64,000 bases of DNA from Octopus sinensis (lineage: Eukaryota). Each line of letters starts with the position of its first letter. Position 1 is the stretch's first letter. The notes beneath the pieces were generated by a model. The model was not told the origin of the DNA. It saw only the letters and a program-made list of their open reading frames with translations, and ran no database searches. A program made the position numbers and the translations under genes. Shown here piece after piece: positions 11,781 through 62,520 of the stretch. Where the stretch lies: positions 11,532,001-11,596,000 of the forward strand of contig NC_043026.1 of NCBI RefSeq assembly GCF_006345805.1, written 5' to 3'.

Positions 11781-14700
11781 GTGAATAAAAAGAAAAGCAA
11801 AATGTCACAACAGTCTAATATTTGTGAAAAATTATGCTCTAATGATCGAACATTAATAACACACAAATTCAATCATACAGGTGAGAAACCATATCATTGT
11901 GATACCTGTGGTAAATCATACTCTCAAAAACAATTACTAATTAAACACAACCGCAAGCATACAGGTGAGAAACCATATCATTGTGATACCTGTGATAAAT
12001 CATACTCTCAAAAACAATTACTAATTAAACACAACCGCAAGCACACAGGTGAGAAACCATATCATTGTGATACCTGTGATAAATCATACTCTCAAAAACA
12101 ATTACTAATTAAACACAACCGCAAGCACACAGGTGAGAAACCATATCATTGTGATACCTGTGATAAATCATACTCTCAAAAACAATTACTAATTAAACAC
12201 AACCGCAAGCACACAGGTGAGAAACCATATCATTGTGATACCTGTGATAAATCATACTCTCAAAAACAATTACTAATTAAACACAACCGCAAGCATACAG
12301 GTGAGAAACCATATCATTGTGATACCTGTGATAAATCATACTCTCAAAAACAATTACTAATTAAACACAACCGCAAGCATACAGGTGAGAAACCATATCA
12401 TTCTGACACCTGTGATAAATCATTCTCTCAAGAACAATTACTAATTAAACACAACCGCAAGCATACAGGTGAGAAGCCATATCATTGTGACACCTGTGAT
12501 AAATCATTCTCTCAAGAACAATTACTAATTAAACACAACCGCAAGCATACAGGTGAGAAGCCATATCATTGTGACACCTGTGATAAATCATTCTCTCAAG
12601 AACAATTACTAATTAAACACAACCGCAAGCATACAGGTGAGAAACCATATCATTCTGACACCTGTGATAAATCATTCTCTCAAGAACAATTACTAATTAA
12701 ACACAACCGCAAGCATACAGGTGAGAAACCATATCATTGTGACACCTGTGATAAATCATTCTCTCAAGAACAATTACTAATTAAACACAACCGCAAGCAT
12801 ACAGGTGAGAAACCATATCATTCTGACACCTGTGATAAATCATTCTCTCAAGAACAATTACTAATTAAACACAACCGCAAGCATACAGGTGAGAAACCAT
12901 ATCATTGTGACACCTGTGATAAATCATTCTCTCAAGAACAATTACTAATTAAACACAACCGTAAGCATACAGGTGAGAAACCATATCATTGTGACACCTG
13001 TGATAAATCATTCTCTCAAGAACAATTACTAATTAAACACAACCGTAAGCATACAGGTGAGAAACCATATCATTGTGACACCTGTGATAAATCATTCTCT
13101 CAAGAAGAATTACTAATTAAACACAACCGTAAGCATACAGGTGAGAAACCATATCATTGTGACACCTGTGATAAATCATTCTCACAAGAAGAATTACTAA
13201 TTAAACACAACCGTAAGCATACAGGTGAGAAACCATATCATTGTGACACCTGTGATAAATCATTCTCTCAAGAACAATTACTAATTAAACACAACCGTAA
13301 GCATACAGGTGAGAAACCATATCATTGTGACACCTGTGATAAATCATTCTCTCAAGAACAATTACTAATTAAACACAACCGTAAGCATACAGGTGAGAAA
13401 CCATATCATTGTGACACCTGTGATAAATCATTCTCTCAAGAACAATTACTAATTAAACACAACCGTAAGCATACAGGTGAGAAACCATATCATTGTGACA
13501 CCTGTGATAAATCATTCTCTCAAGAACAATTACTAATTAAACACAACCGTAAGCATACAGGTGAGAAACCATATCATTGTGACACCTGTGATAAATCATT
13601 CTCTCAAGAACAATTACTAATTAAACACAACCGTAAGCATACAGGTGAGAAACCATATCATTGTGACACCTGTGATAAATCATTCTCTCAAGAACAATTA
13701 CTAATTAAACACAACCGCAAGCATACAGGTGAGAAACCATATCATTCTGACACCTGTGATAAATCATTCTCTCAAGAACAATTACTAATTAAACACAACC
13801 GTAAGCATACAGGTGAGAAACCATATCATTGTGACACCTGTGATAAATCATTCTCTCAAGAACAATTACTAATTAAACACAACCGCAAGCATACAGGTGA
13901 GAAACCATATCATTCTGACACCTGTGATAAATCATTCTCTCAAGAAGAATTACTAATTAAACACAACCGCAAGCATACAGGTGAGAAACCATATCATTGT
14001 GACACCTGTGATAAATCATTCTCTCAAGAACAATTACTAATTAAACACAACCGCAAGCATACAGGTGAGAAACCATATCATTCTGACACCTGTGATAAAT
14101 CATTCTCTCAAGAAGAATTACTAATTAAACACAACCGTAAGCATACAGGTGAGAAACCATATCATTGTGACACCTGTGATAAATCATTCTCTCAAGAACA
14201 ATTACTAATTAAACACAACCGTAAGCATACAGGTGAGAAACCATATCATTGTGACACCTGTGATAAATCATTCTCTCAAGAACAATTACTAATTAAACAC
14301 AACCGTAAGCATACAGGTGAGAAACCATATCATTGTGACACCTGTGATAAATCATTCTCTCAAGAACAATTACTAATTAAACACAACCGTAAGCATACAG
14401 GTGAGAAACCATATCATTGTGACACCTGTGATAAATCATTCTCTCAAGAACAATTACTAATTAAACACAACCGTAAGCATACAGGTGAGAAACCATATCA
14501 TTGTGACACCTGTGATAAATCATTCTCTCAAGAACAATTACTAATTAAACACAACCGTAAGCATACAGGTGAGAAACCATATCATTGTGACACCTGTGAT
14601 AAATCATTCTCTCAAGAACAATTACTAATTAAACACAACTGCAAGCATACAGGTGAGAAACCATATCATTGTGACACCTGTGATAAATCATTCTCTCAAG

Positions 14701-17084
14701 AACAATTACTAATTAAACACAACTGCAAGCATACAGGTGAGAAACCATATGATTGTGACACCTGTGGTAAATCATTCTCTCAAGAACAATTACTAATTAA
14801 ACACAACCGCAAGCATACAGGTGAGAAACCATATTATTGTGATACCTGTGATAAATCATTCTCTCAAGAACAATTACTAATTAAACACAACCGTAAGCAT
14901 ACAGGTGAGAAACCATATCATTGTGATACCTGTGATAAATCATTCTCTCAAGAACAATTACTAATTAAACACAATCGCAAGCATACAGGTGAGAAACCAT
15001 ATCATTGTGATACCTGTGGTAAATCATTCTCTCAAAATCATTTCCTAATTCTACACAAGCGCAGGCATACAGGTGAGAAACCATATCGTTGTGACACCTG
15101 TAGTAAGTCATTCACTAGTATTCGAAGACTAATTGAACACACCTGTATTCCTACATGTGAGAAACTATATAATTGTGATACCTGTGGTAAATCATTCTCT
15201 CAAAAGCAATTACTAATTAAACACAGGCATAAACATAAAGTTGAGAAGCCATATGATTGTGACACCTGTGGCAAATCATTCTCTGGAAGCCAAGAGCTAA
15301 TTCATCACAAGCAAATTCATACAGAGGGGAAACTATATTTTTGTAGTGTCTGTGGTGAACTGTTCTCTGGAGTTCAAGAAATAGTTCAACACAGTCAAAC
15401 TCATACAGGAAAGACTGTGTATTATTGTGATATCTGTGGTAAATCGTTCCCTCTAATACAACAGCAAATTAAACACACACAGCGTCATAGAGTAAGGAAA
15501 CCGTGTCATTGTGATATATGTGATATGTCATTCTCCAGTGATAGAAGTTTAATTCGACACATAGAAAAACTTGCAAGCGGGAAAGAAAATTGCGATATCT
15601 GTGGTGATTCATTCTCTGGAATTCAAGAACTAATTCAACACAAACAAACTCATACAGCAGAGGAACTACATTGTGATATCTGTGGTGATTCGTTCTCTGG
15701 AATTCAAGAACTAATTCAACACAAACAAACTCATACAGCAGAGGAACTACATTGCGATATCTGTGGTGATTCGTTCTCTGGAATTCAAGAACTAATTCAA
15801 CACAAACAAACTCATACAGCAGAGGAACTACATTGCGATATCTGTGGTGATTCGTTCTCTGGAATTCAAGAACTGATTCAACACAAACAAACTCATACAG
15901 CAGAGGAACTACATTGTGATATCTGTGGTGATTCGTTCTCTGGAATTCAAGAACTAATTCAACACAAACAAACTCATACAGCAGAGGAACTACATTGTGA
16001 TATCTGTGGTGATTCGTTCTCTGGAATTCAAGAACTGATTCAACACAAACAAACTCATACAGCAGAGGAACTACATTGTGATATCTGTGGTGATTCGTTC
16101 TCTGGAATTCAAGAACTGATTCAACACAAACAAACTCATACAGCAGAGGAACTACATTGCGATATCTGTGGTGATTCGTTCTCTGGAATTCAAGAACTGA
16201 TTCAACACAAACAAACTCATACAGCAGAGGAACTACATTGTGATATCTGTGGTGATTCGTTCTCTGGAATTCAAGAACTAATTCAACACAAACAAACTCA
16301 TACAGCAGAGGAACTACATTGCGATATCTGTGGTGATTCGTTCTCTGGAATTCAAGAACTGATTCAACACAAACAAACTCATACAGCAGAGGAACTACAT
16401 TGTGATATCTGTGGTGATTCGTTCTCTGGAATTCAAGAACTGATTCAACACAAACAAACTCATACAGCAGAGGAACTACATTGTGATATCTGTGGTGATT
16501 CGTTCTCTGGAATTCAAGAACTGATTCAACACAAACAAACTCATACAGCAGAGGAACTACATTGTGATATCTGTGGTAAATCGTTCTTTCTAAAGCAGCG
16601 ATTAAATCAACACAAACAAACTCATACAGCAGAGGAACTACATTGTGATATCTGTGGTAAATCGTTCTTTCTAAAGCAGCGATTAAATCAACACAAACAA
16701 ACTCATACAGCAGAGGAACTACATTGTGATATCTGTGGTAAATCGTTCTTTCTAAAGCAGCGATTAAATCAACACAAACAAACTCATACAGCAGAGGAAC
16801 TACATTGTGATATCTGTGGTAAATCGTTCTTTCTAAAGCGGCGATTAAATCAACACAAACAAGCTCATACAGCAGAGAAACTATATCAGTGTGGTATCTG
16901 TGGTGAATCGTTTTTTCAAAGAGAGCATCGTATTCAACACAGACAACGTCATATTCAACACAGACCACGTCATATTCAACACAGACAACGTCATATTCAA
17001 CACAGACAACGTCATATTCAACACAGACAACGTCATATTCAACACAGACAACGTCATATACGTATGAATCCATATCGATATTGA
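11781..17084 (+). CDS. ZNF-B: giant C2H2 zinc-finger protein (about 62 finger units) with His-heptad tail
   Basis: 1767-codon open frame; the ORF-track start is GTG, first ATG at 11802; acceptor-like TTCCAG at 11389. Confidence 0.8.
11877..14984 (+). repeat. Coding minisatellite, 37 x 84 bp near-identical fingers
   Basis: ACAGGTGAGAA recurs every 84 bp; [28 protein letters not shown]. Confidence 0.95.
15590..16880 (+). repeat. Coding minisatellite, 16 x 81 bp fingers with TAEEL linker
   Basis: CATACAGC at 15651, 15732 ... 16866; 12 GIQELIQ + 4 FLK(Q/R)RLNQ units. Confidence 0.95.
16930..17056 (+). repeat. Coding 21-bp repeat x6 (IQHRQRH)
   Basis: ATTCAACACAGACAACGTCAT repeated. Confidence 0.9.
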
Positions 17085-22047: not shown

Positions 22048-22092
22048 CTCTATAGTGTCGAGAGAAGATAAACACTAGAAGTTGAATAATGT

Positions 22093-23346
22093 ATGAAGAA
22101 GTTTAAATATAAACTACAGTTTAAAAGTATAGATTTGCATAGCAACATGAACAAAGAGAAAGGGAAAACATCACACCATTGTGATATTTGTGGGAAATTA
22201 TTCTCTGAAAGTCGTAAATTAATGTACCACAAATATATTCATACAAGAGAGAAATCATATCATTGTGATATCTGTGGCAAATCATTCTTTGGAACTGTTA
22301 GCTTAACAATACACAAACGTAGTCATACAGGAGAGAAGCCATATCGCTGTGATATATGTGACAAATGCTTCTCTACAAATAGTAGCTTAACTAGACACAA
22401 ACTTAATCATACAGGAGAGAAACCGTATCATTGTGACATTTGTGGTAAATCATTTTCTCAAGGTCATCGCCTAACTGAACACAGACGAAGTCATACAGGT
22501 GAGGAGACTTATCACTGTGATATCTGTGGCAGATCATTCTTACAAAATTCTAACTTATCTAGGCACAAACGTATTCACACAGGAGAGAAACCATATCAGT
22601 GTGATATCTGTGGTGAATCATTCTCTGAAAATGGTGGATTGATTTCTCATAAGCATATTCACACAGGAGAGAAACCATTTTGCTGTAATATTTGTGGCAA
22701 ATCATTCTCTCAGAGGGGTACCCTAACTCGTCACAAACGTATTCATACAGGAATGAAACCATATTGTGACATTTCTGGTAAACCCTTCTCTGCAGGTAGC
22801 AGCTTTATTCAACTCAAACAAGGTCATACAAGTGAGAAACATAAACCATACCAGTGTGATATCTGCGGCAAATCATTCTCTGTAAAAAGTTACTTGGTGA
22901 AACACAAACAAATTCATAGAGGAGAGATATCATATTGTTGTGATATCTGTGGTAAATCATTCCCTGGAAGTGGTAACTTAAAGACACACAAGCACATGCA
23001 TACAGGAGAGAAGCCGTATCACTGTGACATCTGTGGTAAATCATTCGCTGGAAGTAGCAACTTAATTAAACACAAACGTATTCATACAGGAGAGAAACCA
23101 TATCAGTGTGATATCTGTGGCAAATCATTCGCTCGAAGTTATCACCTAACTAAACACAAACGAAGTCATACAGGTGAGAAACCATATCATTGTGACACCT
23201 GTGGCAAATCATTCTCTGAAAGTTGGAACTTAACAATGCACATACGTATTCACACAGGTGATAAACCTTATCACTGCGATATTTGTGGCAAATCATTCCC
23301 CCAAAGTGGTCAGTTAATCAAGCACAAACTCGTTCACACAGGATAG
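22093..23346 (+). CDS. ZNF-C: C2H2 zinc-finger protein, 13 intact + 1 degenerate finger
   Basis: 417-aa ORF with a real ATG at 22093; conserved MNKEKG Met at 22147. Confidence 0.9.
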
Positions 23347-23549
23347 TAGCCAAATCACGATGATATATGTGGTCAATCATTCTCTGCAGGAAGTCACTTA
23401 ACCAGACAAATATATTCATAGTTGAGGGAAATCATTCTCTCAAAACAGTTACATAACTACACATACATTCACACAGGGGAGATTCCATATCAATGTGATA
23501 GCTTCCCTGTGATAAATCTTTCTCTAGAATGAGTAATTTAATCCCTTAA

Positions 23550-23769
23550 CCCTTTGGTGTTCAAATTTCTCTATTAAATGTAATACTTTTTCACTCAAAT
23601 TGTTTTGAATTAATCATGCATTATGTCATAGCTTTAAGGTTTCAATGATATGATTGTTTATTTTTAGAATGTCACTGTAGGTTAGGTGTGAGAGGCTGGA
23701 TATGGCCAATTTGAATATAAAACATGTAGAATATTTGGGCCGGATATGGCCGGTTTAAACACTAAAGGG
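23550..23769. mobile_element. piggyBac-like MITE, TTAA TSD
   Basis: TTAA|CCCTTTGGTGTT...AACACTAAAGGG|TTAA; empty site in the paralog near 60203-60217. Confidence 0.85.
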
Positions 23770-24302
23770 TTAATGGATCAATTATTTTGATATGGTGTTT
23801 CATTTCTCTTTAAGGGGAACATATTTTTTTATTTCCTTTTTTAATTATATACACTGTGTTAATTACAATAAAAGGTTTTTTTTTATCTTGTTTCCTTTAT
23901 TTTTTATTATAGTAATTAAAATGTACTTTTGCTCATTTGGATTTAAATGAGTTAACTCAAACATTGAAAAAATACATATAACTTTACTATCTTCGATTTT
24001 TTTATAAGATATATTGCTTTTAAATCAAAGGAATATTTTTTAAAAAATGTGATAGTTTATTTACAATGATATTTAAAACAAGGAGTTACACACAAAGTTA
24101 TCTTGCAGACATCACACATGTATCTGCTTTCTCTTTGAATCAGACAAGCAATTGATTATCTTCTCTGTCATCTTCTGAAAAGTTGTCAGAATCTGAACTA
24201 CACATGTCTAATTCATCCCCAAAGCTTTCCAGATCGTGAAATGAAAAATAGCTTTGTGATCGCTGAATATATCTAAATCTTCATCCATTTTGAGAGAAAA
24301 AA

Positions 24303-26990: not shown

Positions 26991-27785
26991 CGTAAGTTAA
27001 CTAGACAGGAACGTATCCACACAGGTGAGAGACCTTATCAGTGTGATATCTGTGGAAAATCATTCTGTCAGAATGGGGAATTGTTCTCACACAGGCATAT
27101 TCATACAGGAGAGAAACCATATCACTGTGATATCTGTGGTAAATCATTCTCTCAGAATGGTGAATTAACTGTTCACATGTATATCCACACTGGGCAGAAA
27201 CCATACCAGTGTGATATCTGCGGTAAATCATTCTCTTGTAACCCTCGCTTAACTGTACACAAACGTATTCATACAGGAGAAAAGCCATATCATTGTGATA
27301 TTTGTGGTAAATCATTCTCACAAAATGAACATTTGACTGTACACGAACAAAGTCATACAGGAGAAAAACCATATCACTGTGATATTTGTGGGAAAGCATT
27401 CTCTGTAAATAGTAGGTTAAAAACGCACAAACTTATTCACACAGGTGAGAAACCATATAGTTGTGATATCTGTGGCAAATCATTCTCTTTAAGGGGCAAT
27501 TTAACTACACACAAGCGTATTCACACAGGAGAGAAACCATATTGTTGTGATATCTGTGGCAAATCATTTCCTCGAACCGATGGTTTGACTGTCCACAAAT
27601 ACAGTCATACAGGTGAGAGACCATATTGTTGTGATATCTGTGGTAAATCATTTTCTCGAAATCACAACCTGACCGACCACAAACAGATTCATACAGGAGA
27701 GAAACCATATCGCTGTGATATCTGTGGCAAATCATTCCTTCGAAATCGAGATTTAACTATTCACATACGTGTTCACACAGAATAG
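26991..27785 (+). pseudogene. ZNF-D: 5'-truncated orphan C2H2 array (9 fingers + partial)
   Basis: Finger homology begins mid-helix (RKLTRQERIH) at 26991; no ATG before the first fingers (ORF-track start is TTG); no conserved leader. Confidence 0.7.
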
Positions 27786-27856
27786 AGACCTTATCAGTGT
27801 GATATCTATGGTAAATACTTCTCTGTATTAAGTTCCTTAATTAATCACAAACATAT

Positions 27857-28520
<664 letters not shown>

Positions 28521-37069: not shown

Positions 37070-38278
37070 TTGCCTAGTGACATGAATAAGGAGCAAGGGA
37101 AAACATCACACCACTGTGATATCTGTGGGAAATCATTTTCTAACAGTCGTACATTAATAACACACAAATACACTCATACAGGAGAGAAGCCGTATAATTG
37201 TGATATCTGTGGTAAATCATTCTCTCATAATCATAACTTAACTAGACACAAGCGTATTCATACAGGAGAGAAACCATATCGGTGTGATATCTGTGGTAAA
37301 TCGTTTTCTGAAAATCACCACTTAACTGAACACAAACGGAGTCATACAGGAGAGAAGCCATATCACTGTGATGTCTGTGGGAAATCATTCTCTGTAAGTC
37401 GTAAATTAACAACACACATACGTATTCATACAGGAGAAAAGCCGTATCACTGTGATATCTGTGGTAGGTCATTCTCTCAAAACGGTGAATTAACGTCACA
37501 CAGACATATTCACACTGGAGAGAAACCATATCACTGTGATGTTTGTGGTAAATCATTCACTGAAAGTTGTAAGTTAACTAAACACAAACGTATTCACACA
37601 GGAGAGAAACCATATCACTGTGATATCTGTGGTAAATCATTCACTGAATCTCATCATTTAACTGGACACAAACATATTCATACAGGAGAGAAACCATATT
37701 GTTGTGATATTTGTGGTAAATCATTCTCTGGAAGCAGTAACTTAACTAGCCACAAACATGTTCATACAGGAGAGAAACCATATCATTGTGATATCTGTGG
37801 TAAATCATTCTCTCAGAGTGGAACCTTAACTAATCACAAACGTATTCACACAGGAGAGACACCATATCACTGTGATATCTGTAGCAACTCGTTCTCTAAA
37901 AGTCGTGAATTAACTATTCACATGCGTATTCACACGGGAGAGAATCCATTTCACTGTGATATCTGTGGTAAATTTTTTTCTCGAAATCAGCACCTGACTG
38001 AACATAAACGTATTCATACAGGAGAGAAACCATATTGCTGTAATATCTGTGGGAAATCATTCTTTCGAAGTGGTGATTTAACTATTCACATCCGTATTCA
38101 CACTGGAGAGAAGCCATATCAGTGTGATATCTGTGGTAAATCGTTCTCTCAAGGTCATCACCTAACTGAACACAAACGAAGTCATACAGGTGAGAAACCG
38201 TATCATTGTGACACCTGTGGCAAATCATTCTCTGAAAGTGGTAAGTTAACCAGACACAAACGTACTCACACAGGATAA
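37070..38278 (+). CDS. ZNF-E: C2H2 zinc-finger protein, 14 fingers
   Basis: The ORF-track start is TTG; likely start is ATG 37082 (MNKEQG). Confidence 0.9.
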
Positions 38279-43587: not shown

Positions 43588-45015
43588 CTATCTCGTGTGA
43601 ATATATTTGTGTTTAGTCAAGCGGCTCTTTACATAGAAAGATTTGCCACAGATGTCACAATGAAATGGTTTTTCTCCAGTGTGCATGAGTTTGTGAAGAG
43701 TTACTTCACCACGTCGAAGGAATGCCTTGCCACAGATATTACAGCAATATGGTCTTTCTCCCGTATGTGTACGTTTGTGGTCAAGCAGATGTTGGTTTTG
43801 ATTGAATGATCTACCACAGATTTCACAGTGATAAGGTTTCTCCCCTGTGTGAATACGTTTGTGAACAGTTACACTGCTGCTTTCAGAGAATGACTTACCA
43901 CAAATATCACAGAAATAACGTTTCACTCCTGTGTGAACACGTTTGTGTGTCGCAAAGTTACCACTTCCAGTGAATGATTTACCGCAAACCTCACAATGAT
44001 ATGGCTTCTCTCCTGTATGAATTCGTTTGTGTTCAGTTAGGTGATATTTATCAAAATATGATTTACCACAGACATCGCAATGATATAGCTTCTCACCTGT
44101 ATGTATACGTTTGTGTTGAGTTAAGTTATGATTAAGAGAGAATGATTTACCACAGATATCGCAGAGATACGGTTTCTTTCCGGTGCAAATATTCTTGTGT
44201 GACAGAAGTTCACTATTTTCAGAGAATGATTTACCACAGATCTCACAGTGATATGGCTTCTCTTCTGTATGAATACGTTTGTGCTTAGTTAAGAAATGAT
44301 TGAAAGAAAATGAATGCCCACAAACATCACAGAGATATGGTCTCTCTCCTGTATGGATAATACGTTTGTGTTCAGTCAGGTGATGATTTTGAGAGAATGA
44401 TTTACCACAGATATCACAGTGATATGGCTTCTCTCCTGTATGACTTCGTATGTGTTTAGTTAGATGTTGATTTCGTAAGAATGATCTACCACAGATATCA
44501 CACTGATGCGGTTTTTCTCCTGAATGAATACGTTTGTGTCTAGCTAAGTAACTACTTTCAGAGAATGATTTACCACAGATATTACAATAAAATGGTTTCT
44601 CTTCTGTCTGAAAACATTTATGTTTATTTAAATAATAATTGAGAGGGTAAGATTTCCCACAAATATCACAGTGATACGGTCTCTCTCCAGTATGAATAAC
44701 ACGTTTGTGTTCTATTAGATTTTGATTTTGAGAGAATGATCTACCACAGATATCACAGTGATGTGGTTTCTCTCCTCTATGGATTATACGTTTGTGTCTT
44801 CTGAAGCTAGACTCATGAACGAATGATTTCCCACAAACATCACAGTTAAACGGCTTCTCTCCAGTATGAATGTATTTGTGTGTTACTAATGTACGATTGT
44901 CACAGAGAAATTTCCCACAGATATCACAGTGGTGTAATTTTTTCCTTTTCTCTTTATCCATGCCTCTATGCAAATCAATACTTTTCAATTGTATTTTATA
45001 TCTAAACTTATTCAC
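43588..45015 (-). CDS. ZNF-F: C2H2 zinc-finger protein, 16 finger units
   Basis: The ORF-track start is GTG; likely ATG at 44961 (MDKEK); decayed fingers continue to about 43440. Confidence 0.9.
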
Positions 45016-45544
45016 ACATCATTCAACTTCCATTGTTTATTTTCTCTCTTGACAATATAGAGATGTGTATCTTCTTTATGTTTCTATACTTCATTCCTAT
45101 TAAATATTTCTTCTATTGTGATTTTTGTCAATACATGGACTGAATTGTAAACTCCTTTTTAAATCTGTCCAAGTGTAATTCATATGCAAAGACGTCTTGT
45201 TCACATTCCAGACAATCAACAAAACAATTATTGCAATCAATCTCAGTATACAAAAAATATTTGCTTGTCGTTTGGTATAGATTTGTATAACATCTTTCTT
45301 GAGAGTTTAAGATGTAAAAAAAATTTTTTCGATGCCGATTGTTATTCTGAAATAGTAGAAAAACAACAGTATAAGATACAAGGGTTACTGAAAATACAAG
45401 AGTGGAAACTTTTGTATATTTTTTATAGAAGTAAACTGTAGAACTAAACATTAACCTGAACTGTTTCCCACTAGTTTTAAGATCTATATGATAGTGTGTT
45501 TTTATATATATATATATTTATTTACGGTGTTTATATATGTTTAT

Positions 45545-46160: not shown

Positions 46161-46966
46161 TTTAGGTGTGTGTGGTGGGGGTGACTGTGCGCCAGGTCCG
46201 TCGGAGAGGTGGGTGACATTTCTAAAATTTAAAATTTGATGGGAGGAGGGGTGAAATTTGAAAAAAAAGGTGTTTTTCTTGCATATTCGTAATCCCCGAT
46301 ATCTAAAATGTGGGAATCTGTAAAAAAATTTTTCATAAAAAATGCATTTTTTGAGTGGGGAGGGGCGATGTGGGGGAGGGTAAAATTTGAAAAATTTTTT
46401 TTTTGTATATTCGTCATCTCCGATATCTTAAACGTAGAAATCCGAAAAAGCTTTTTTTCAAAAATGCATTTTTCAAAGAGAGGTGCAAACTTGCATTAGC
46501 CTAGGGGGTTTGGGACATAATAGGAGGTTAGGGTACTTGATTCGACACAAAAAATCCGAGTGTTTTTTTTTTTTTTTCTTAGTGAAAATATGGAAATTCA
46601 GTCTTGATTTTTCGCCCACACATCAAATTGCAAGAATATCGTAATGTACAACATTTGAAGGGTATTTAATGAGCGTTATATCTTAAAATATCCATTTTTT
46701 CACACTTGTGTAGTTATGTGTCAATCTGTTTAATTCATTGATTTTAGACAAAAGCGGCGGAGGAAAAAAATAAAAATCTATGTCTCACAAGTAACATCAG
46801 AAGGTTTTAAATTATACACGACCAACTACTTTTTACTAAATTAACTGTATTATTATAATCTTACCTGTTACGCTACAGGAATTTGTGTTTTAAGTGAAAA
46901 AGCTCGAATTACAACAGAATATATTTCAGGACGCCATTTCAATGAAATTAATTTTCATAACAGAAA

Positions 46967-46987
46967 TTATAAAATTAGACTCGGAAA
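46967..46987 (-). promoter_or_regulatory. Conserved upstream motif of ZNF-F
   Basis: Minus TTTCCGAGTCTAATTTTATAA. Confidence 0.5.
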
Positions 46988-47260
46988 CACAAATGGCGAA
47001 ACGTACTTTATTTTTTTAAGCTCAAAGGAAAATACATAGGTATTAAATATCTGAAGCAATTGATTTGAAATACGCAAGGTATCACTGTTAAATGTATTGG
47101 AATTGTTAAAATTTTTATTCCAAATAAAAATAATAATTGAATTTTGTATATTTTCGTTTTAGTATGTTTCGTTTAACCCATTTTGTTGTTTGAAGTTGTG
47201 CTGTCAAATCTTGACCCCAGTTGAATGACACAATGGAATGACACAGCGAATTACATTTAA

Positions 47261-49946: not shown

Positions 49947-51985
49947 TGATTGATTGATTGATTGATTGATTGATTCTAGTTTCAGCTTATGAGCTGTGGC
50001 CATGCTGGGGCACCGCCATTTGGTGTTGCTACTTGGTTTCACTTCATGGAGGCTTTCTAGCAACTGCTATTTGGTGCATGAGAGAGTTCGATGCAGCTGC
50101 CCTCATCTGCCCCTCCTGCCGTGAAGTTGGTTCATCTGGGACACCTGACAGGAAGAGATCCAGCTTCATTTTAAAGACATCTGTATCCACCCCATGCAGG
50201 TCTCTCAGGTTCTTCGGGAGGATATTGAAGAGCTGTGGGCCTCGGAAGCCCAGGCTATCACAGAATCTTGTCCTACATCTCGCGTCATCACTCATGTAAA
50301 TACCTAGGTCACGCACTGATTGTGCCTCTGGGATTGCTATTCCTCCGGGTCCTGTGTATTCATTGGGTATTGCATTTAGTTTTGCATGCTGATAGTATAG
50401 AGCTTGAAACTTTTCAGCATTGAACTGCATGCTATTCTTTTCGGCCCACTTGTATATTTCGTCCAGCTCATATTGCAGGTGCCTAGTGTCTTCAGGGTTC
50501 TGTATTGCCTGTGAAACTTTTGTATCATCTGCATAACTTGTGATCGTGGCTCTCTGCGTGGCTGAGGGCATGTCTGAGAGGGCCATTATGAACAGTAGTG
50601 GTCCCAGAACAGTGCCCTGCGGAACACCGCTCACTATTTGCGTGTTAATGGAAGTGGCCCCATTGGCCACTACCACCTAACTTCTATCTTTCAGAAAGTC
50701 ATGAAGCCATTCTCCCAGTTTTCCAACTATGTTGAGATCACGCAGTTTGTGACATATCATTCCATGATCGACTTTATCAAAGGCCTTTGCAAAGTCGAGA
50801 TATATCACTTCCACATTTGAGTGGTTGAGCAGCCGTTTCAGCACCCAGTCATAGTGTTGTAGGAGCTGAGTTAAACAGCTTCTCCCTGGTCGGAAACCAT
50901 GTTGGGTGTCGGGCAGCAAGTCATTCTCTTCAAGGAAGGTGATCAGCTTCCTTCTGACTATTCGTTCCATGACCTTGCTGATGTGTGAGGTCAGAGAGAT
51001 AGGTCTATAGTTCTTGGCTTCCGCTCTGCTACCTCCTTTATGAATGGGGCATATTTTACCTTCCTTCAGTTTTCTTGGAAGTTTGCCAGCTGCAAGGAAG
51101 CTCTGAAAGAGGAACTGCAGTGGTCTTGCTAGGACTCTCTTACATGCTTTTAGGAGGATTGCCGGGAATCCATCGGGGCCAGTAGCTGAGTCTGTTTTCA
51201 TTTCATCTATAGCCTTGATTACATCGTCTTCCTTTATATCGATGTAATCTATCGTCGCCGCCTCTGATTTTATATCTACAGTGGTAAAAAAGTCAGTTGG
51301 ATTGGTGATTTGGAGATGTCCAAGGGGTGGAGTGAAAACACTCTTGAATTGCTCATTCAGTATTTCACTTACCCTCATTGGTTTTCCTGTAAGTGTGCCA
51401 TCCTTTTCGAGGAGTGGCCCTATTCTACAGTGCACCGTAGCTGTTTCTTTGGCATACCTGTAGAAAGCTCTGGGGTTAGATTTTATGTTGTCTATAGCCC
51501 AGGCTTCTTTGTCTGCTCTTTCCTTTTCATGAGACATTTTTCGATTTCCAACAGTTTTATTTTTAGGCGGGACTTTTCACTGCTTTCAATCTGTTTGTTT
51601 AGGCGATTTGAAAATTTTGTACGCCGTCTCATTAAAATTTTCCTCTCTCTGGGGATTTTGTTCTTGTGTACAGTGGCCTTTCTCTCTGGGACACATTTGT
51701 AGCATATGGCTTGCATTACAGACATGAATTGTTGAAGTTTCACGTCGATGTCTGGCGAGGAGAGACATTTAGGCCAGTTTTGTTTGAGGATCTCTTTCTC
51801 AATTTGTTTCCAGTTTGCTTTATGGTAGTTCAAGATTCTGAGGGTTTCTTGTAGGCTGCATGTCCGTGCTCTCTTTTGGCCCGTACATGGTCAGCTCTAT
51901 CATGTTGTGATCCGAGAGTAGTGTCGGTGTCACTTTCACATTATGGATGAGATCCATGTCATTTGTGAAGCAGAGATCCAATATA
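49947..51985 (-). mobile_element. 5'-truncated, disrupted CR1/L2-like LINE (endonuclease end + RT + 3'UTR, (AATC)n tail)
   Basis: LDLCFTN...SDHN; ATGPDG; YRPISLTS; QHGFRPGRSC; YLDFAKAFDKV; SGVPQGTVLGPLLF; YADD; frameshift, in-frame TAG at 50677 and an internal deletion. Confidence 0.9.
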
Positions 51986-52970: not shown

Positions 52971-54563
52971 CTATCCCGTGTGGGTACGTTTGTGTTTAGT
53001 CAAAGTGCTCTTTACATAGAAAGATTTGCCACAGATGTCACAATGATATGGTTTCTCTCCTGTATGCATACGTTTGTGAATAATTATTTCACCATGTCGA
53101 AGGAATGATTTGCCACAGATATTACAGCAATGTGGTCTTTCTCCTGTATGTGTACGTTTGTGGTCAATTAGATGCTGATTTTGTGAGAATGAGTTGCCAC
53201 AGATGTCACAGTGATACGGTTTCTCTCCTGTGTGACTACGTTTGTGATAAGTGATGCCACTCCTAACCGCGAATGATTTACCACAAATATCACAACAATA
53301 AGGTTTCTCACCTGTGTGAATACGCAGGTGTATCTTTAAGTGACTACTTCCAGTGAATGATTTACCGCAAACCTCACAGTGATATGGTTTCTCTCCTGTA
53401 TGAATCCGTCTGTGTTCGGTTAGGTTAAGACTATCAGAGTATGATTTACCACAGATATCACACTTATATGGTTTTTCTCCTGTATGTACACGTCTGTGTT
53501 TAATTAAGCTGCCACTTACAGTGAATGATTTCCCACAAATATCACAGCAATAAGGTTTCTCTCCTGTGTGAATACGTGAGTGTCTCATGAAGCTACCACG
53601 TCCAGTAAATGATTTACCACAATCACCACAATGATATGGTTTCTCACCTGTATGAATGCGTTTGTGTTCAGTTAGGTGATAATTATCAAAGTACGATTTA
53701 CCACAGATATCACAATGATATGGCTTCTCACCTGTATGTATACGTTTATGCTTATTTAAGACATAATCAATAGAGAATGATTTACCACAGATATCACAGT
53801 GATATGGCTTTTCTTCTGTGCAAATATTCTTGTGTGAAATAAGTTCACTATTTTCAGAGAATGATTTATCACAGATGTTACAATAAAATGGCTTGTCTCC
53901 TGTGTGAATACGTTTGTGTTTAGTTAAGTGACGATTGAAAGAGAATGATTTACCACAGACATCACAGTGATATGGCTTCTCTCCTGTATGAATAACACGT
54001 TTGTGTTCAGTTAGATGTTGATTTTGAGAGAATGATCTACCACAGATATCACAGTGATATGGCTTCTCTCCTGTATGACTTCGAATATGATTAATTAGAT
54101 GCTGATTTTGAAGGAATGATTTGCCACAGATATTACAGTGATATGGTTTTTCTCCTGTATGAATACGCTTGTGTGTAGTTAAGTTACAACTTTCAAAGAA
54201 TGATTTACCACAGATATTACAACTAAATGGTTTCTGTTCCGTATGAATATATTTGTGTTTATTTAAGTAATGATTTTCAGAGAATGATTCACCACAGATA
54301 TCACAGTGATATGGTTTCTCTCCTCTATGAACAATACGTGTATGTCTGCTGAGACTAGACTTATGAAGGAATGATTTACCGCAGACATCACAGTTATGTG
54401 GTTTCTCTCCTGTATGAGTGTATTTGTGTGTTGTCAATTTATGACTTTCAGAGAAAAATTTCCCACAGATATCACAGTGGTGTGATGCTTTACTTTTCTC
54501 TTTATCCATGCCTCTATGCAAATCAATACTTTTCAATTGTATTTTATATCTAAACTTATTCAC
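52971..54563 (-). CDS. ZNF-G: C2H2 zinc-finger protein, 18 finger units; tandem paralog of F
   Basis: The ORF-track start is GTG; likely ATG at 54509; leader nearly identical to F. Confidence 0.9.
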   Translation of the reverse strand: MNKFRYKIQLKSIDLHRGMDKEKSKASHHCDICGKFFSESHKLTTHKYTHTGEKPHNCDVCGKSFLHKSSLSRHTRIVHRGEKPYHCDICGESFSENHYLNKHKYIHTEQKPFSCNICGKSFFESCNLTTHKRIHTGEKPYHCNICGKSFLQNQHLINHIRSHTGEKPYHCDICGRSFSQNQHLTEHKRVIHTGEKPYHCDVCGKSFSFNRHLTKHKRIHTGDKPFYCNICDKSFSENSELISHKNICTEEKPYHCDICGKSFSIDYVLNKHKRIHTGEKPYHCDICGKSYFDNYHLTEHKRIHTGEKPYHCGDCGKSFTGRGSFMRHSRIHTGEKPYCCDICGKSFTVSGSLIKHRRVHTGEKPYKCDICGKSYSDSLNLTEHRRIHTGEKPYHCEVCGKSFTGSSHLKIHLRIHTGEKPYCCDICGKSFAVRSGITYHKRSHTGEKPYHCDICGNSFSQNQHLIDHKRTHTGERPHCCNICGKSFLRHGEIIIHKRMHTGEKPYHCDICGKSFYVKSTLTKHKRTHTG

Positions 54564-56013
54564 ACATCATTCAACTTCCATTGTTTATTTTCTCTCTTGA
54601 CAATATAGAGATGTGTATCTTCTTTATGTTTCTATACTTCATTCCTATTAAATATTTCTTGTGAGTTTTGTCAATATATGGACTGAATTGTAAACTCCTT
54701 TTTTAATCTGTCCAAGTGTAATTCATATGCAAAGACGTCTTGTTTACATTCCAGACAGTCAACAAAAGAATTATTGCTATCAGTCTCAGTATACGAAAAA
54801 TATTTGCTTGTCGTTTGGTATAGATTTGTATAACTTCTTCCTTGAGAGTTTAAGATGTAAGAAAAACTTTTCGATGCCAATTGTTATTCTGAAATAGTAG
54901 AAAAACAACAGTATAAGATACAAGGGTTACTTAAAATAAATTATATGCAAACACCCTCCCTGCATATGAAAAAGACAGTTATTGGAATCTTTATTTATTT
55001 ATGTAATTTGTATTAATTTTTAAAATAAAAATGCCTACATTAAGAAAAGCACTTTCAACATTAAAAAAAATGTAAATTCTTAATGATATGCAATAAAAGA
55101 AAACTATGCATGAACCTCAGATGTTATACATGAAAGGTGAACACCATAAAATAAGCATTAATCCGGAGATATTGAATTCACCTCAAGAGACGTCATTGAT
55201 TGGTTGAAATTGCCGAAATGCAAGAAATTAAAGAACAAATAGCTTATAAACTACAGAATTTTCTCAATAAAGCCAAAAGAAAAAGATGTTTTATAAACAC
55301 ATTCTACCAGTATACGAAGTTTAAAAGTGATTAGTTGCAAAGAATTTATTTTTAAAATGTGCAGGTCAAAGCGAAAAGATCCAATAATTTTTTAAACAAA
55401 GTAAATAAAACACAAAGTAAGGATCGACTAGTCACGACTAGCTAGTGCGGATTCGAGTGTACGCGAACCGGGACCACTCTTCTGAAGTAGTACCTTATTT
55501 TCCATATTCTTAATCTCCATATTATTCCACGTAGATTGAAAAAAAAAATTTGGAAGTAAGTTAAAATTAAAAAATTTGTGGTGGGGAGGGGGGGGATTAA
55601 ACATTTTGAAAACATGGTCTTTGGTATTATTCGGAATCTCCGTCATCGAAAACATAGGAATCTGCTTCAAAGAGAAAAAGGTGGGTAAAAGGCGGTTTTT
55701 CCGTACAGGTGTACTTGTAAACATTAACCAAAATTTTTGTTGAAGGGAGTAAAGAAGTTTCGATTTGTTTCCTCATAACTTTATGAAAACTGGATATATT
55801 TTTTTTAACAAAGTTTTCTACAAATCTGTGTCTGATAGTAAAAAATGACGATTACAGAATTTGATGTGAAAACAAAATTTGGGATGGGGGTCACAAACCT
55901 CGATTTTGTTTCTTCATACGTTTTCCAGAAGTATGTTAATTATCACCACCCTTATTTTTCGTCCACATACCAAATTCCAAGAATACCGTAATGTACAATA
56001 TTTCAAAGGTTTT

Positions 56014-57223
56014 TATGTATACGTTTATGTTTATTTAGAACATAATCGATAGAGAATGATTTACCACTGATATGGCTTCTCTTCTGTGCAAATATTCTTG
56101 TGTGAAATAAGTTCACTATTTTCAGAGAATGATTTATCACAGATGTTACAATAAAATGGCTTGTCTCCTGTATGAATACGTCTGTGTTTAGTTAAGTGAC
56201 GATTGAAAGAGAATGATTTACCACAGATATCACAATGATATGGTCTCTCTCCTGTATGGATAATACGTTTGTGTTCAGTTAGATGTTGATTCTGAGAGAA
56301 TGATCTACCACAGATATCACAGTGATATGGCTTCTCTCCTGTATGACTTCGAATATGATTAATTAGATGATGATTTTGAAGTAATGATCTACCACAGATA
56401 TTACAGTGATATGGTTTTTCTCCTGTATGAATACGCTTGTGTGTAGTGAAGTTACAACTTTCAAAGAATGATTTACCACAGATATTACAACTAAATGGTT
56501 TCTGTTCTGTATGAATATATTTGTGTTTATTTAAGTAATGATTTTCAGAGAATGATTCACCACAGATATCACAATGATATGGCTTCTCTCCTGTATGAAT
56601 AACACGTTTGTGTTCAGTCAGGTGCTGATTTCGAGAAAAAGATTTGCCACAGATATCACAGTGAAATGGATTCTCCCCCATGTGAATTCGCATGTGAATA
56701 GTTAATTCACGACTCTTAGAGAATGAGTTGCTACAGATATCACAGTGATATGGTGTCTCTCCTGTGTGAATACGTTTGTGATTAGTTATGGTTCCACTCT
56801 GAGAGAATGATCTACCACAGATATCACAGTGATATGGTGTCTCTCCTGTGTGAATACGTTTGTGATTAGTTAAGGTTCCACTCTGAGAGAATGATCTACC
56901 ACAGATATCACAGTGATATGGTGTCTCTCCTGTGTGAATACGTTTGTGATTAGTTAAGGTTCCACTCTGAGAGAATGATCTACCACAGATATCACAGTGA
57001 TATGGTGTATCTCCTGTGTGAATACGTTTGTGATTAGTTAAGGTTCCACTCTGAGAGAATGATTCACCACAGACATCACAGTTATGTGGTTTCTCACCTC
57101 TATGAACAATACGTGTATGTCTGCTGAGACTAGACTTATGAAGGAATGATTTACCACAGACATCACAGTCATGTGGTTTCTCTCCTGTATGACTTCGAAT
57201 ATGATTAATTAGATGCTGATTTT
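56014..57223 (-). pseudogene. ZNF-H: orphan mosaic C2H2 array (13 fingers) inside the G intron
   Basis: Open frame 57221-56061 begins mid-helix after a TAA; an 11-nt deletion gives the stop at 56061; no leader. Confidence 0.75.
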
Positions 57224-57232: not shown

Positions 57233-58215
57233 CTAGCAGTATCGCCCGGCGTTGCTCGGGTTTGTAAGGGAAATAACTATATAAGCATTTTTAGAGAGTT
57301 ATAGCCAAAAAATGGAAAAAAAGAAAATGGTAAATTTTTTTTTAAATCGTTGACTCATCGTAGACATTTTTAGAGAGTTACTTCCCATATATAATAGCGA
57401 AAAAATGCCTTAAAATGGAAAAAAATGATGGTAAATAATTTTTTTAAATCGTTGACTCATCGTAGACATTTTTAGAGAGTTACTTCCCATGTATAATAGC
57501 GAAAGAATGCAATAAAATGGAAAAAAATGATGGTAATTTTTTTTAAAATCGTAGACTCATCGTAGACGTGCGCTAATATCCAGAAGGGCTCGAGATGAAT
57601 CACGACTATAAGATACCCGGTTTTGGTTAAACTGCACCGCAAAATGTGGGAGTAGTTAGGAATCTAAATAGTAGGAGACAGACACACAACTTCACTTTTA
57701 TATATAAACTAGCAGTATCGCCCGGCGTTGCGCGGGTTTGTAAGGGAAATAACTATATAAGCATTTTTAGAGAGTTACTTCCCTTATAGATGCCAATTCG
57801 GGCTTTCTTGGCCATTTCTGTTTTGGTGTCTTCAAGCCATGAAGTCGTTGTTCTAAAAGAACGCTGGTCTCCTTGACAACGCTTTACGACGTTGATTTCC
57901 TTACACTCCCTTCCCCACAGCTTCACGAGGGAGGGAAGAAGGGGGAGAAGCAAACAGGTGCAGGTGTGACCATGGACGCCAACTCCACCGCCATCGACAC
58001 ACGAAAAATTATGCATTAAAATGGAATAAAAAATTATGTTAAATTATTTTAAAAATCGTAGACTCATCGTAGACGCGCGCTAATACCCAGAAGGGCTCGA
58101 TATGAATCAAGACTATAAGATACCCGAATTTGGTTAAACTGCACCGCAAAATGTGGGAGTAGTTATGAATCTAAATCGTAGGAGACAGACACAACCTTAC
58201 TTTTATATATAAAGA
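57233..58215 (-). mobile_element. Two head-to-tail Helitron-like elements (57233-57708, 57709-58215)
   Basis: Minus A|TCTTTATATATAAAAG start; CCCGAGCAACGCCGGG hairpin followed by GCTAG ends at 57233 and 57709. Confidence 0.75.
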
Positions 58216-58492
58216 TATCCATTGTTCATCCTTGTGCAGTTCTGTCTCAATCTGTTTAATTCATTGATTTTAGACAAAGCGGTGGAGGATAGAAAATGCA
58301 ATCGATGTCTCACAAGCAACATCAAAAGGTTTTAAATTATACACGACCAACTACTTTTACTAAATTAACTGTATTATTACAATCTTACCTGTTATGCTAC
58401 AGAAATCTGGATTTTAGTGAAACAGCTTCAATTACAACAAAGAAAGTAATTATACGACGCCATTTCACCGAAGTAGATTTTCACAACAGAAA

Positions 58493-58513
58493 TTATAAAA
58501 ATAGACTCGGAAA
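58493..58513 (-). promoter_or_regulatory. Conserved upstream motif of ZNF-G
   Basis: Minus TTTCCGAGTCTATTTTTATAA. Confidence 0.5.
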
Positions 58514-58831
58514 CACAAATGACGAAATACACTTTGTTTTATTTTTTAAGCTCCAAGGAAAGATACATAGGAATTATGTCTCAAACAATTAACTTGAAAT
58601 ATGCAAAGTGTCGTTGTTAAATGTATTGGAATTGTTAAAATTTTATTTCAAATAAAAAGAATAATGATTCAGTAAATTTCTGTAACTTCAATGGCTAATA
58701 ATAGATTTAGTACTGCGACGGAAGTTACAATATAATTTTATTTTGAATGTTTCTGGAGAAGAATAATGTATCAATCTTGATTTAAATGAATTCAAACAAT
58801 AAATGACGTATCATTCTCACTTTTACGTTTT

Positions 58832-60397: not shown

Positions 60398-61986
60398 CTA
60401 TCCTGTGTGAACGAGTTTGTGCTTGATTAACTGACCACTTTGGGGGAATGATTTGCCACAAATATCGCAGTGATAAGGTTTATCACCTGTGTGAATACGT
60501 ATGTGCATTGTTAAGTTCCAACTTTCAGAGAATGATTTGCCACAGGTGTCACAATGATATGGTTTCTCACCTGTATGACTTCGTTTGTGTTTAGTTAGGT
60601 GATAACTTTGAGCGAATGATTTGCCACAGATATCACAATGATATGGCTTTTCTCCTGTGTGTATACGTTTGTGTTTATTTAAGTTATAGTTATGAGAGAA
60701 TGGTTTACCACAGATATCACACTGATATGGTTTCTCTCCTGTATGAACACGTATGTGCTTAATTAAGCTGCTATTTGCAGAGAATGATTTTCCACAAATA
60801 TCACAACAATATGATTGCTCTCCTGTATGAATTTGTTTGTGTTTAATGAAGTAACTATTAACAGAGAATGATTTGCCACAGATATCACAGTGATATCCTT
60901 TCCTTCCTGTATGAATACGTCTGTGTTCAGTTAGATGATGATTTTGAGGGAATGACTTACCACAGATATCACACTGATATGGTTTCTCTCCTGTATGAAT
61001 ACGTTTGTGTTTAATTAAGTTGCTACTTCCAGCGAATGATTTACCACAGATGTCACAGTGATACGGCTTCTCTCCTGTATGCATGTGCTTGTGTGTCTTT
61101 AAGTTACCACTTCCAGAGAATGATCTGCCACAGATATCACACTGATATGGTTTCTCTCCTGTGTGAATACGTTTGTGTTTCACCAAGGAACTTTTTACAG
61201 AGAATGATTTGCCGCAGATATCACACTGATATGGTTTATGTTTCTCACTTGTATGACCTTGTTTGAGTTGAATAAAGCTGCTACCTGCAGAGAAGGGTTT
61301 ACCAGAAATGTCACAATATGGTTTCATTCCTGTATGAATACGTTTGTGACGAGTTAGGGTACCCTCTGAGAGAATGATTTGCCACAAATATTACAGCAAA
61401 ATGGTTTCTCTCCTGTGTGAATATGCTTATGAGAAATCAATCCACCGTTTTGAGAGAATGATCTGCCACAGATATCACACTGATATGGTTTCTCTCCTGT
61501 GTGAATACGTTTGTGCCTAGATAAGTTATTACTTCGTAAGAACGATCTGCCACAGATATCACAATGACATGATTTCTCTCCTGTGTGACTTCGTTTGTGT
61601 TCAGTTAGGTGATGACCTTGAGAAAATGATTTACCACAAATGTCACACTGATACGGTTTCTCTCCTGTATGATTAAGTTTGTGTTTTGTTAAGTTACCAC
61701 TTGCAGAGAAGGATTTACCACAAATATCACAGTGATATGGCTTCTCTCCTGTATGACTACGCTTGTGTATTCTTAAGCTACTATTTTTAAAGAATGATTT
61801 GCCACAGATATCACAATGATATGATTTCTCGCTTGTATGAATATATTTGTGTTTCATTAATTTATGACTTTCAGAGAAGAATTTCCCACAAACATCACAA
61901 TGGTGTGATGTTTTCCCTTTCTCTTTGTTCATGTTACTATGCAAACCAATTCTTTTAAACCGTGTTTTATATTTAAACTTATTCAC
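60398..61986 (-). pseudogene. ZNF-I: inverted paralog of ZNF-C, 18 finger units, 1-nt frameshift (or assembly error)
   Basis: ORFs 61354-61986 and 60398-61387; GGG at 61362-4 (minus) versus GGGG at 22715-8 in C. Confidence 0.8.
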
Positions 61987-62520
61987 ACATTATTCATCTT
62001 GCATTCTTTTTCTTTTCTCATGACAATATACAGATATTTATCTTCTTTACATTTCTATATTTCATTCCTTTTAAATATTTCTACTTCAGTGATTTTTGTC
62101 AATATCTGGATTGAGTTGTAAACTCTGTTTTAATTCAAATGCAATGTCACATTCTAGTCAACAAAAGAATTATTTCTATCAATCTCAGCATACAAAATAT
62201 ACAAGCTTGTAATTTGACATAGATTCATATAAGGAAATTTATATCTTTCCTGTCTAACATTTTCTTTTAGATTTTAAAATATGATAGATATTGCTGATGT
62301 ATACCATATATACAATTCTTTGGCGCCAATGTCTGAAATAGTAGAGAAACGACAGTGTAAGACACAGAGATCACTTGGAATACAACAGAATAAATTTTAG
62401 TACATTTTTAGAGATTTTTAGATCGTAGTTTGGAGAATAGTGAAGAATAAGCTCGTTTGTTTATCTTGTTATTAATTAAATCTGGGCAAAACTACAGATG
62501 CGTGCCTGCCAAATGCGTTA

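Follow-up and report, generated by a model that had tools for sequence, protein, structure and literature searches.

The stretch of DNA described here (64,000 nucleotides (nt) of the Octopus sinensis genome; NCBI RefSeq assembly GCF_006345805.1, contig NC_043026.1, positions 11,532,001 to 11,596,000 of the forward strand), hereafter 'the window', is AT-rich (38% G+C), contains no Ns, and is filled by a cluster of C2H2 poly-zinc-finger genes, designated A to I by position (Table 1). One of these, H, is an array of zinc fingers on the minus strand that is a finger-by-finger mosaic of two other members of the cluster, G and E, both of which retain full, intact open frames.

Finger-by-finger composition of H

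The frame of H opens after a TAA (57224-57222), runs for 386 codons (57221-56064) and stops at a second TAA (56063-56061), with its first in-frame ATG at codon 177. It qualifies as a Krueppel-type C2H2 array, with 13 complete units (H1 to H13) in which all zinc ligands are present; 13 stretches of it are matched by the Pfam family zf-H2C2_2 (E = 3e-109), and the last unit, H13, ends in Cys, like G8 and its F counterpart. The origin of each unit was traced in two ways: by an ungapped scan of every 84- or 87-nt unit of H against every position of the window, and by 'painting' the array with a copying model (Viterbi), with H itself masked and with three different switch penalties. The two methods agree, and the segmentation is unchanged at all three penalties. 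Identity of H to the named donor fingers is 94-100%. By comparison, when fingers of A, D and F and the remaining ones of E and G are matched to other genes, the best identity is 76-90%; between-gene finger identities of at least 94% are confined to H and to the paralogous pair C and I.

The resulting order is a partial helix of G5 (H0), G2, four E9-type units, E10, a hybrid of E11 and G6, and G3 to G8, followed by a frameshifted G9. This order and numbering, together with an open frame of about 387 codons, a very high identity to both relatives, and the placement of E on the other strand some 19 kilobases (kb) away, had been read by eye in a first-pass annotation made from the letters alone, and all of it has held up; gene E lies on the plus strand, 17.7-19 kb from H. 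In the per-finger scan the partial helix matches G5 at 47/48 positions, H3 and H4 (which are identical to one another) match E9 at 82/84 each, and H5 does so at 81/84. H6 differs from E10 by four synonymous and one non-synonymous changes, while the two halves of H7 match E11 (E 37949-37996) at 46/48 and G6 (G 53973-54011) at 39/39. The fingers H8 to H13 individually match G3 to G8 at 80-83/84 (82/87 for H11 against G6), with 9 synonymous and 8 non-synonymous differences. The frame is then shifted by an 11-nt deletion between 56068 and 56067, where CTGTGATATCT (G 53799-53789) is missing, and homology to G9 stops just past the last His codon of that finger; the undeleted frame would have run to ...KHKRIHKNL and an immediate stop.

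Table 1. Features of the window discussed in the text (ORF, open reading frame; CDS, coding sequence).
Feature	Position	Strand	Basis, match or remark
A	1039-2061	minus	ORF
Conserved acceptor of A	2409-2416	minus	motif scan
B	11781-17084	plus	ORF
C	22093-23346	plus	ORF
D	about 27000-28420	plus	ORF
Conserved acceptor of E	36664	plus	motif scan
E	ORF 37070-38278, CDS 37082-38278	plus	
E9-E11 of gene E	37781-38032	plus	relative or donor of H's E-type tract
F	43588-45015	minus	ORF
Conserved acceptor of F	45347-45354	minus	motif scan
G	52971-54563, ATG 54509	minus	relative or donor of H's G-type segments
Conserved acceptor TATTTCAG of G	54896-54889	minus	motif scan
Host dispersed repeat, 3' side of insertion	55954-56015	minus	84-85% to F-upstream copy
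H	ORF 56014-57223; homology to G/E fingers 56016-57223	minus	
Deletion site, new stop, out-of-frame G9 remainder	56016-56072	minus	tail 48/52 to G9
H8-H13, collinear G3-G8	56073-56579	minus	490/507 to G 53805-54311
H7, hybrid	56580-56666	minus	N-half E11 56619-56666; C-half G6-type 56580-56618
H6, E10	56667-56750	minus	79/84 to E 37865-37948
H3-H5, three tandem 84-nt E9-type units	56751-57002	minus	83/84 per unit in painting
H2, hybrid G2/G3 to E9	57003-57086	minus	78/84 to E9
H1, G2 (5-residue His spacing, RGEKP linker)	57087-57173	minus	84/87 to G 54312-54398
Candidate acceptor ACAG/GA in H's first linker	57184-57186; AG 57186-57185, exon start 57184	minus	sequence reading
H0, G5 recognition-helix part (NQHLINHIRSH), mid-finger cut	57193-57223	minus	31/31 to G 54079-54109
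Painting: G5 helix	57223-57193		31/31
Painting: G1/G2 linker, G2, start of G3	57192-57065		122/128
Painting: four E9-type units (period 84), E10, E11 to middle	57064-56619		last stretch 201/210
Painting: G6 C-half	56618-56583		36/36
Painting: G3-G8	56582-56068		498/515
Painting: G9	56067-56016		48/52
Two tandem copies of unclassified ~490-nt element, directly 5' of H	57233-58202	minus	
Host dispersed repeat, 5' side of insertion	58203-58665	minus	84-85% to F-upstream copy
I	60398-61986	minus	ORF
Conserved acceptor of I	62333-62340	minus	motif scan

Breakpoints, tandem units and exchanged tracts

H thus bears the marks of a mosaic formed by gene conversion or non-allelic recombination: its segments alternate, its breakpoints lie within shared homology, and the relatives themselves are intact. 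The crossover intervals comprise 8-15 nt of shared identity and every one of them is in finger register; the junction from G5 to G2, for example, falls within a 15-nt stretch of shared linker. The N-terminus of H2 is patchy: of its informative sites, three are of G2 type and two of G3 type (GAA, Glu), before E9 takes over from about 57064. The unit repeated in H consists of nt 19-84 of E9 followed by nt 1-18 of E10, with a common AAA to AGA (Lys to Arg) change; H5 carries in addition one private change, and Tandem Repeats Finder reports a period of 84 in H3-H5. An unequal exchange at TGTGATATCTGT, which is identical in E9 and E10, would explain the amplification of this unit simply. A G6-type N-terminus for the repeated E9 units was considered and set aside in favour of the simpler combination of E10's own first 18 nt and one shared point change.

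The hybrid finger H7 can be read in more than one way. In F, the older paralogue of G, fingers 2 and 3 are separated by an additional finger, F3 (...EHKRVIH); G is without it, and the C-terminal half of H7 occupies the exact place of F3. That half may therefore be the remnant of an ancestral F3-like finger, and not a piece of G6 from which the array then jumped to G3. Guided by the architecture of F, the G-type parts of H are all collinear except at the 5' junction of G5 with G2. The E11/G6 hybrid of the first-pass annotation accordingly stands as a match of letters, while the path from G6 to G3 that it implied is open to revision.

Two tracts in H are closer to their relatives than their surroundings are. 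At four sites clustered within 21 nt, the C-terminal half of G6 is derived relative to F7 and H11, which agree with each other there, and it matches the C-half of H7 without a difference; since these derived changes recur in H7, a short tract was exchanged between G and H after the two had separated. The E9 part of H3 and H4, likewise, is identical to E9 at 61/61 positions, while E10 differs at 5/84. Both tracts show exchange after divergence, which may have run either way. They are also what might be expected if H were a silent donor cassette, a 'reservoir' feeding finger variants to G and E by gene conversion, in a cluster where patchy conversion is active. However, transfer from G to H and from E to H accounts for both tracts no less well; neutral evolution would be expected of a silent cassette, and H does not show it (see below); and nothing in the way of mechanism or selection argues for such a role in particular. 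We consider it improbable.

The same breakpoints bear on whether H exists at all as assembled. An assembly artefact, either a chimeric join or a divergent allele of G from the other haplotype misplaced in tandem, might be suspected in a region filled with repeats, where near-identical 84-nt units are easily miscounted, where a functional allele would account for coding-type differences, and in an O. sinensis assembly with 5.2% duplicated BUSCOs (PMC10700109). Against this, the outer junctions lie where H and its flanks share no homology, and the inner crossovers lie in identities that are too short for overlap-driven misjoins. Because private substitutions are also spread throughout H and the sequence is free of gaps, H is taken to be a real and separate locus, and an artefact is the least probable of the explanations weighed here.

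Exchange between opposite strands

A second pair of genes within the cluster bears upon the strand relationship of H and E. C and I, inverted with respect to each other and some 37 kb apart (22051-24060 on the plus strand against 62030-59922 on the minus strand), are paralogues whose identity is a patchwork in which blocks of 100% alternate with blocks of 87-94%; identity reaches 99-100% over their last fingers and some 200 nt of 3' flank, and I has four extra fingers (60654-60989). This patchwork has the appearance of recent conversion, in patches, between genes on opposite strands, and thereby indicates that such exchange occurs in the cluster. As a separate observation, a 1-nt gap with respect to C (about 61350-61390, minus strand) breaks gene I into two overlapping ORFs; the gap lies inside an otherwise 100% identical block, apparently in a run of G, and may be either a real frameshift or a long-read homopolymer error.

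Taken together with the composition of H, a scheme for its origin can be proposed, in which H would be a third member of the G lineage that was grafted with about 2.5 E-type fingers (E9 to the middle of E11), one of which was then amplified in tandem. The graft would have been made by non-allelic homologous exchange between 84-base-pair (bp) finger repeats, through gene conversion or template switching, and the tandem units by unequal exchange or slippage; the strand of the donor would be irrelevant to any of these processes. The array would have been translated for most of its history.

Substitution pattern and coding constraint

Over 810 aligned nt, H differs from its relatives or donors at 29 positions, all private substitutions that are distributed throughout the array (24 transitions and 5 transversions). 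They fall 3, 6 and 20 times at first, second and third codon positions, and 17 are synonymous and 12 non-synonymous, which corresponds to a ratio of non-synonymous to synonymous divergence (dN/dS) of 0.16 at a synonymous divergence (dS) of 0.12 (range about 0.10-0.16). None of four further differences, in the G9 tail, alters an amino acid when read in the old frame of G9; with the tail included, the codon positions become 4/6/23, with 23/33 (70%) at third positions. If H had been neutral since it was copied while the donors remained constrained, about 44% would be expected at third positions, and the observed count has a probability of P = 0.002 under this null model (about 0.002-0.02 under several assumptions). 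The third-position share is lower elsewhere in the cluster (36/75 for G against F, and 16/45 for C against I).

This excess of third-position and synonymous differences indicates that the H lineage evolved under coding constraint, and that lineage was probably translated during most of the time since it parted from G and E. Nor does H resemble a neutral pseudogene, with its one indel, the lack of an internal stop in 386 codons and a dN/dS of 0.16, although the donor branches contribute to these counts. The separation itself appears not to be recent, amounting to about a third of the synonymous distance between G and F, while the 11-nt deletion and the amplification of E9 appear to be recent, and the youngest events in H (the deletion, the near-identical E9 copies whose private changes are all non-synonymous, and two replacements in the hydrophobic core) look like a relaxation of constraint. 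Such dates are soft, because conversion is common in the cluster. The first-pass annotation had seen in H a 'snapshot' of finger-level recombination: the recombination is borne out, in register and between relatives on opposite strands, while the snapshot is not, given a dS of this size and differences that are biased towards synonymous sites.

The insertion site of H

Some 400 nt of leader are common to all full genes here (A, E, F, G and I), and begin with a conserved branch/pyrimidine tract and an acceptor ending in CTTATACTGTTGTTTTTCTACTATTTCAG. In a complete gene, an acceptor (...CTACTATTTCAG) is followed by this leader, by an ATG (M-N/D-K-E...) and by the fingers, with a stop shortly past the last of them; from the conserved acceptor and leader ahead of the fingers it follows that the large finger exon is preceded by an intron. 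Two further plus-strand matches to the acceptor motif in the window scan were assigned to no gene. A query made of the leader and first fingers of G retrieved octopus proteins as its sole matches.

H is not a complete gene of this kind, as the motif scan of the window found no conserved acceptor, leader or ATG upstream of it. It lies instead within a dispersed repeat that is contiguous upstream of F (46607-46668 plus 46676-47137) and in other copies, and that upstream of G is split by 2187 nt, so that the intervening 2187 nt represent an insertion; the conserved splice acceptor of G (54889) is 1.1 kb downstream of H, and its ATG is 1.45 kb downstream of the split repeat. The inserted block comprises H and two head-to-tail copies of an element of about 490 nt, and the outer junctions of H show 2-4 nt of microhomology, with seven host bases lost. 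Inserted into a repeat and devoid of leader, acceptor and ATG, H has never been a complete gene at its present site, where it came in as finger-only DNA.

The first-pass annotation had treated H as an intronic orphan of G, a view that is not supported as it was put. No upstream exon of G is known, even if the position could be intronic; the public annotation instead assigns the stop codon of H to a gene model of the upstream neighbour; and H was inserted into a repeat with other DNA, rather than decaying in place as a gene copy.

Each copy of the ~490-nt element ends in ...CCCGnGCAACGCCGGGCGATACTGCTAG followed by a TTTATATATAA-like 11-13-mer, and the copies end in a short GC-rich palindrome and CTAG. 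Copy 1 holds a 102-nt internal tandem repeat (57309-57567), and copy 2 a unique GC-rich segment (about 57790-57990). The window contains no further copy of the element, which matches nothing in Pfam; scans for Rfam families and for tRNAs were negative for the element and for the whole window. A host-like 13-mer, TTTTAAAATAAAA, stands between the element and H. A single insertion of the whole 2187-nt block was therefore rejected, the 13-mer suggesting two adjacent insertion events.

Two particular routes of arrival were also considered. H is not a retrocopy by its anatomy: it has no poly(A) and no 3' untranslated region, and its 3' end lies inside the finger array and is not an mRNA end. What follows that end is only AAAAA, which also fits the host repeat, and while a 5-6-nt AT-rich repeat at the two ends of H and its 5' truncation are compatible with retrocopying, they are not specific to it. 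Capture of H by a Helitron could not be substantiated, since it rests on a weak hairpin and CTAG followed by T at both element copies, which are flanked by the TTTATATATAA-like repeats; a 5' TC terminus was not found at the element, and H lies outside the element's 3' end. Elsewhere in the window (7008-7234), another copy of the host repeat has received a GC-rich insertion of about 227 nt resembling a short interspersed element, with an apparent target duplication, TTCAACAAATACC, at a point a few bases from the equivalent of H's insertion site in the G-upstream copy, which suggests an insertion-prone spot in the repeat.

There are two explanations in which H would play no part as a gene at its present site. 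In the first, which we think rather unlikely though well short of negligible, H is a recent, partial and non-functional copy of a functional mosaic paralogue outside the window, the shuffling having taken place in the parent and the copy having been pasted in by break repair or by a mobile element. Such a history would explain both the coding-type substitutions and the anatomy of a fragment (ends placed without regard to gene structure, flanks that lack homology to G or E, microhomology junctions in a repeat, an adjacent tandem element and a recent 11-nt deletion), and octopus genomes are known for very large C2H2 expansions (PMC12513265). However, no parent has been seen, though protein searches swamped by generic poly-zinc-finger proteins could not have found one; the closest relative, G, is only 1.5 kb away, which favours a local origin; and the 3' cut of H falls exactly after a complete finger.

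In the second, H was dead on arrival, a filler copied piecemeal from G and E by break repair or a template-switching reverse transcriptase and never translated. The many in-register switches over 8-15-nt identities, the non-collinear order from G5 to G2, the microhomology at both outer junctions with a small target deletion, the presence 5 kb off of a reverse transcriptase of the long interspersed nuclear element (LINE) type, and the lack of a start codon would all accord with this. But the third-position and synonymous excess rejects neutrality since copying, the 386-codon open frame has suffered a single indel despite a dS of about 0.12, and neither poly(A) nor an mRNA-like 3' end is present; this account seems to us quite improbable, if marginally less so than that of a silent reservoir.

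Splicing and public gene models

Since H has no start of its own, it could be translated in place only by splicing from an upstream exon into the candidate acceptor ACAG/GA of its first linker. This acceptor is in phase with linker donors of the form ACA G/GTGAG, of which gene I has one at about 60571, and an exon beginning at 57184 would drop the truncated helix and start exactly at H1. Linkers of the GGTGAG type, which are potential donors, occur in many fingers of the cluster, including about 40 in B.

The public annotation (assembly GCA_006345805.1, chromosome CM016888.1) gives F 457 and E 398 amino acids, both as read from the sequence. It also contains a 1004-amino-acid model of the upstream neighbour, which starts beyond the window and whose CDS ends at 56061, the stop codon of H; this is consistent with H serving as a spliced terminal exon. 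A further model, P0125 ('zinc finger protein 708-like', Octopus sinensis, 100 amino acids), is made of exact pieces of G and has its CDS start at 54509; its genomic locus matches 35342-64000 of the window at 100% identity. Its first join leads from the start of G to the G7 linker by way of a GC-AG 'intron' inside the array, its second from a donor (CAG/GTGAGA) in the TGEKP linker of G9 (53732) to the acceptor of F (45347/45346), and it ends E-TAA at 45342; it represents either a conjoined G-F transcript or an annotation artefact. The linker acceptor and donor of P0125 offer a precedent for the inferred use of the linker acceptor in H.

Exact look-ups of the ORFs of A, C, E, F, G and H gave no match, and protein searches with H, with H plus I and against a representative library were dominated by generic long poly-zinc-finger proteins, with a best identity of at most 59% among the listed matches. 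The matches listed by the three word-index searches were no longer than about 1.75 times the query, so that the 1004-amino-acid model would have been hidden from the search with H, and these homology searches neither found nor excluded a parent gene. Among the octopus proteins retrieved there was no O. vulgaris orthologue of G, E or H.

Weighing the evidence

On balance, the reading that we favour, at somewhat under an even chance, is that H is an in-register recombinant of G- and E-type paralogues that was amplified in tandem and maintained as coding sequence, and that is usable at its present site only as a spliced downstream exon. The narrower proposal that H is, or very recently was, a terminal exon at this site is held a shade more tentatively, as a candidate.

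Several observations weigh against this interpretation. On the H branch alone (G3-G8, polarised with F), 5/7 clear changes, or 6/8 with an ambiguous one, are at third positions, in keeping with constraint, but the counts are small (p about 0.045). The youngest changes are all non-synonymous (Leu to Ile in H5, and Glu to Asp in the H2 linker), and two replacements on the same branch affect core hydrophobic residues (Leu to Phe in H9, and Phe to Leu in H10). Conversion makes clock-like reasoning unsafe, as is seen in the F and G leaders, which are 94.6% identical, while the fingers of the two genes are only about 80-85% identical (dS 0.37). The 5' end of H, cut in mid-finger beside a repeat, and the frameshifting deletion at its 3' end are traits of a pseudogene fragment. 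Finally, the candidate acceptor lacks a pyrimidine tract, and the CDS end of the 1004-amino-acid model is a fact of annotation and does not demonstrate expression; adjacent finger ORFs may have been merged too far by the software behind this model.

A broader and considerably more speculative extension of the favoured reading, to which we attach a low probability, is that the cluster is partly a splice-cassette system, in which linker donors (ACA G/GTGAG) and either leader acceptors (TATTTCAG) or linker acceptors (ACAG/GA) join arrays of consecutive units, with H as a start-less alternative terminal exon, maintained by selection, which would owe its specificity to the shuffling of fingers from two other genes and could also trade tracts with G and E.

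Other features of the cluster

Among the remaining genes, B is a 1767-codon open frame with several minisatellite-like blocks of dozens of near-identical 84-nt fingers, in many of which Ser replaces the first zinc-binding Cys; a long antisense ORF over it (15469-17073) is a by-product of the repeats. D has no recognisable leader or acceptor, and its last finger region is duplicated (27687-27856, 170 nt, against 28223-28392, at 97% identity), the duplicates flanking a dispersed-repeat copy of about 366 nt (27687-28392, plus strand). The LINE-type reverse transcriptase lies between F and G (50044-51537, minus strand) as two adjacent ORFs that together match Pfam RVT_1 (profile positions 1-106 and 115-196), with the frame broken once.

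Comparison with known systems

Expanded zinc-finger families must gain new DNA-binding specificities quickly, and a single 64-kb window here contains a recombinant array, both of its relatives, every breakpoint, the insertion site and a signature of coding retention. Should transcripts confirm its use, H would provide a worked example, from an octopus, of a new multi-finger protein arising by grafting between paralogues and not by point mutation, and of a start-less array recruited by splicing; as a dead copy, it would be a routine product of processes familiar from the zinc-finger clusters of vertebrates.

H belongs to the same superfamily and lineage as the octopus C2H2 expansions, which consist of clustered, recently duplicated and repeat-embedded genes (Holzinger et al. 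2025, PMC12513265; Wells et al. 2023, PMC10547256). In the term searches made, neither of these papers mentions gene conversion or pseudogenes, and the former does not mention recombination, exons or unequal exchange.

The closest parallels come from vertebrates. In the mouse clusters of KRAB zinc-finger proteins, neighbouring genes and pseudogenes owe their diversity to finger units being duplicated, deleted and rearranged (Kauzlaric et al. 2017, PMC5363842); tandem duplication of a single finger occurs up to four times, blocks of 2-7 fingers recur, and related fingerprints may be found on the opposite strand. H shows each of these features of 'drifting and shifting' arrays. It differs in lying in a cephalopod cluster devoid of KRAB domains, in being a mosaic without a start of its own, and in that its donors, its breakpoints at base resolution and its insertion site are all found in one window.

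In PRDM9, in-register non-allelic conversion and duplication of 84-bp units within an exon give rise to new arrays and to adjacent fingers that are identical (Oliver et al. 2009, PMC2779102), and H displays the same in-register exchange and duplication of 84-bp units. Exchange in PRDM9, however, takes place within one array and the differences are concentrated at DNA-contact residues that are under positive selection, whereas H combines two different genes and its differences are mostly synonymous. Tracts of the kind detected by GENECONV, and frequent gain and loss of fingers, have also been described between poly-zinc-finger paralogues (Emerson and Thomas 2009, PMC2604467), a pattern that H resembles; those tracts are replacements within aligned full genes, whereas the tract in H adds fingers and its product is a start-less fragment. 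The process is thus one already known from vertebrate zinc-finger clusters, of which H is an unusually well-resolved new case.

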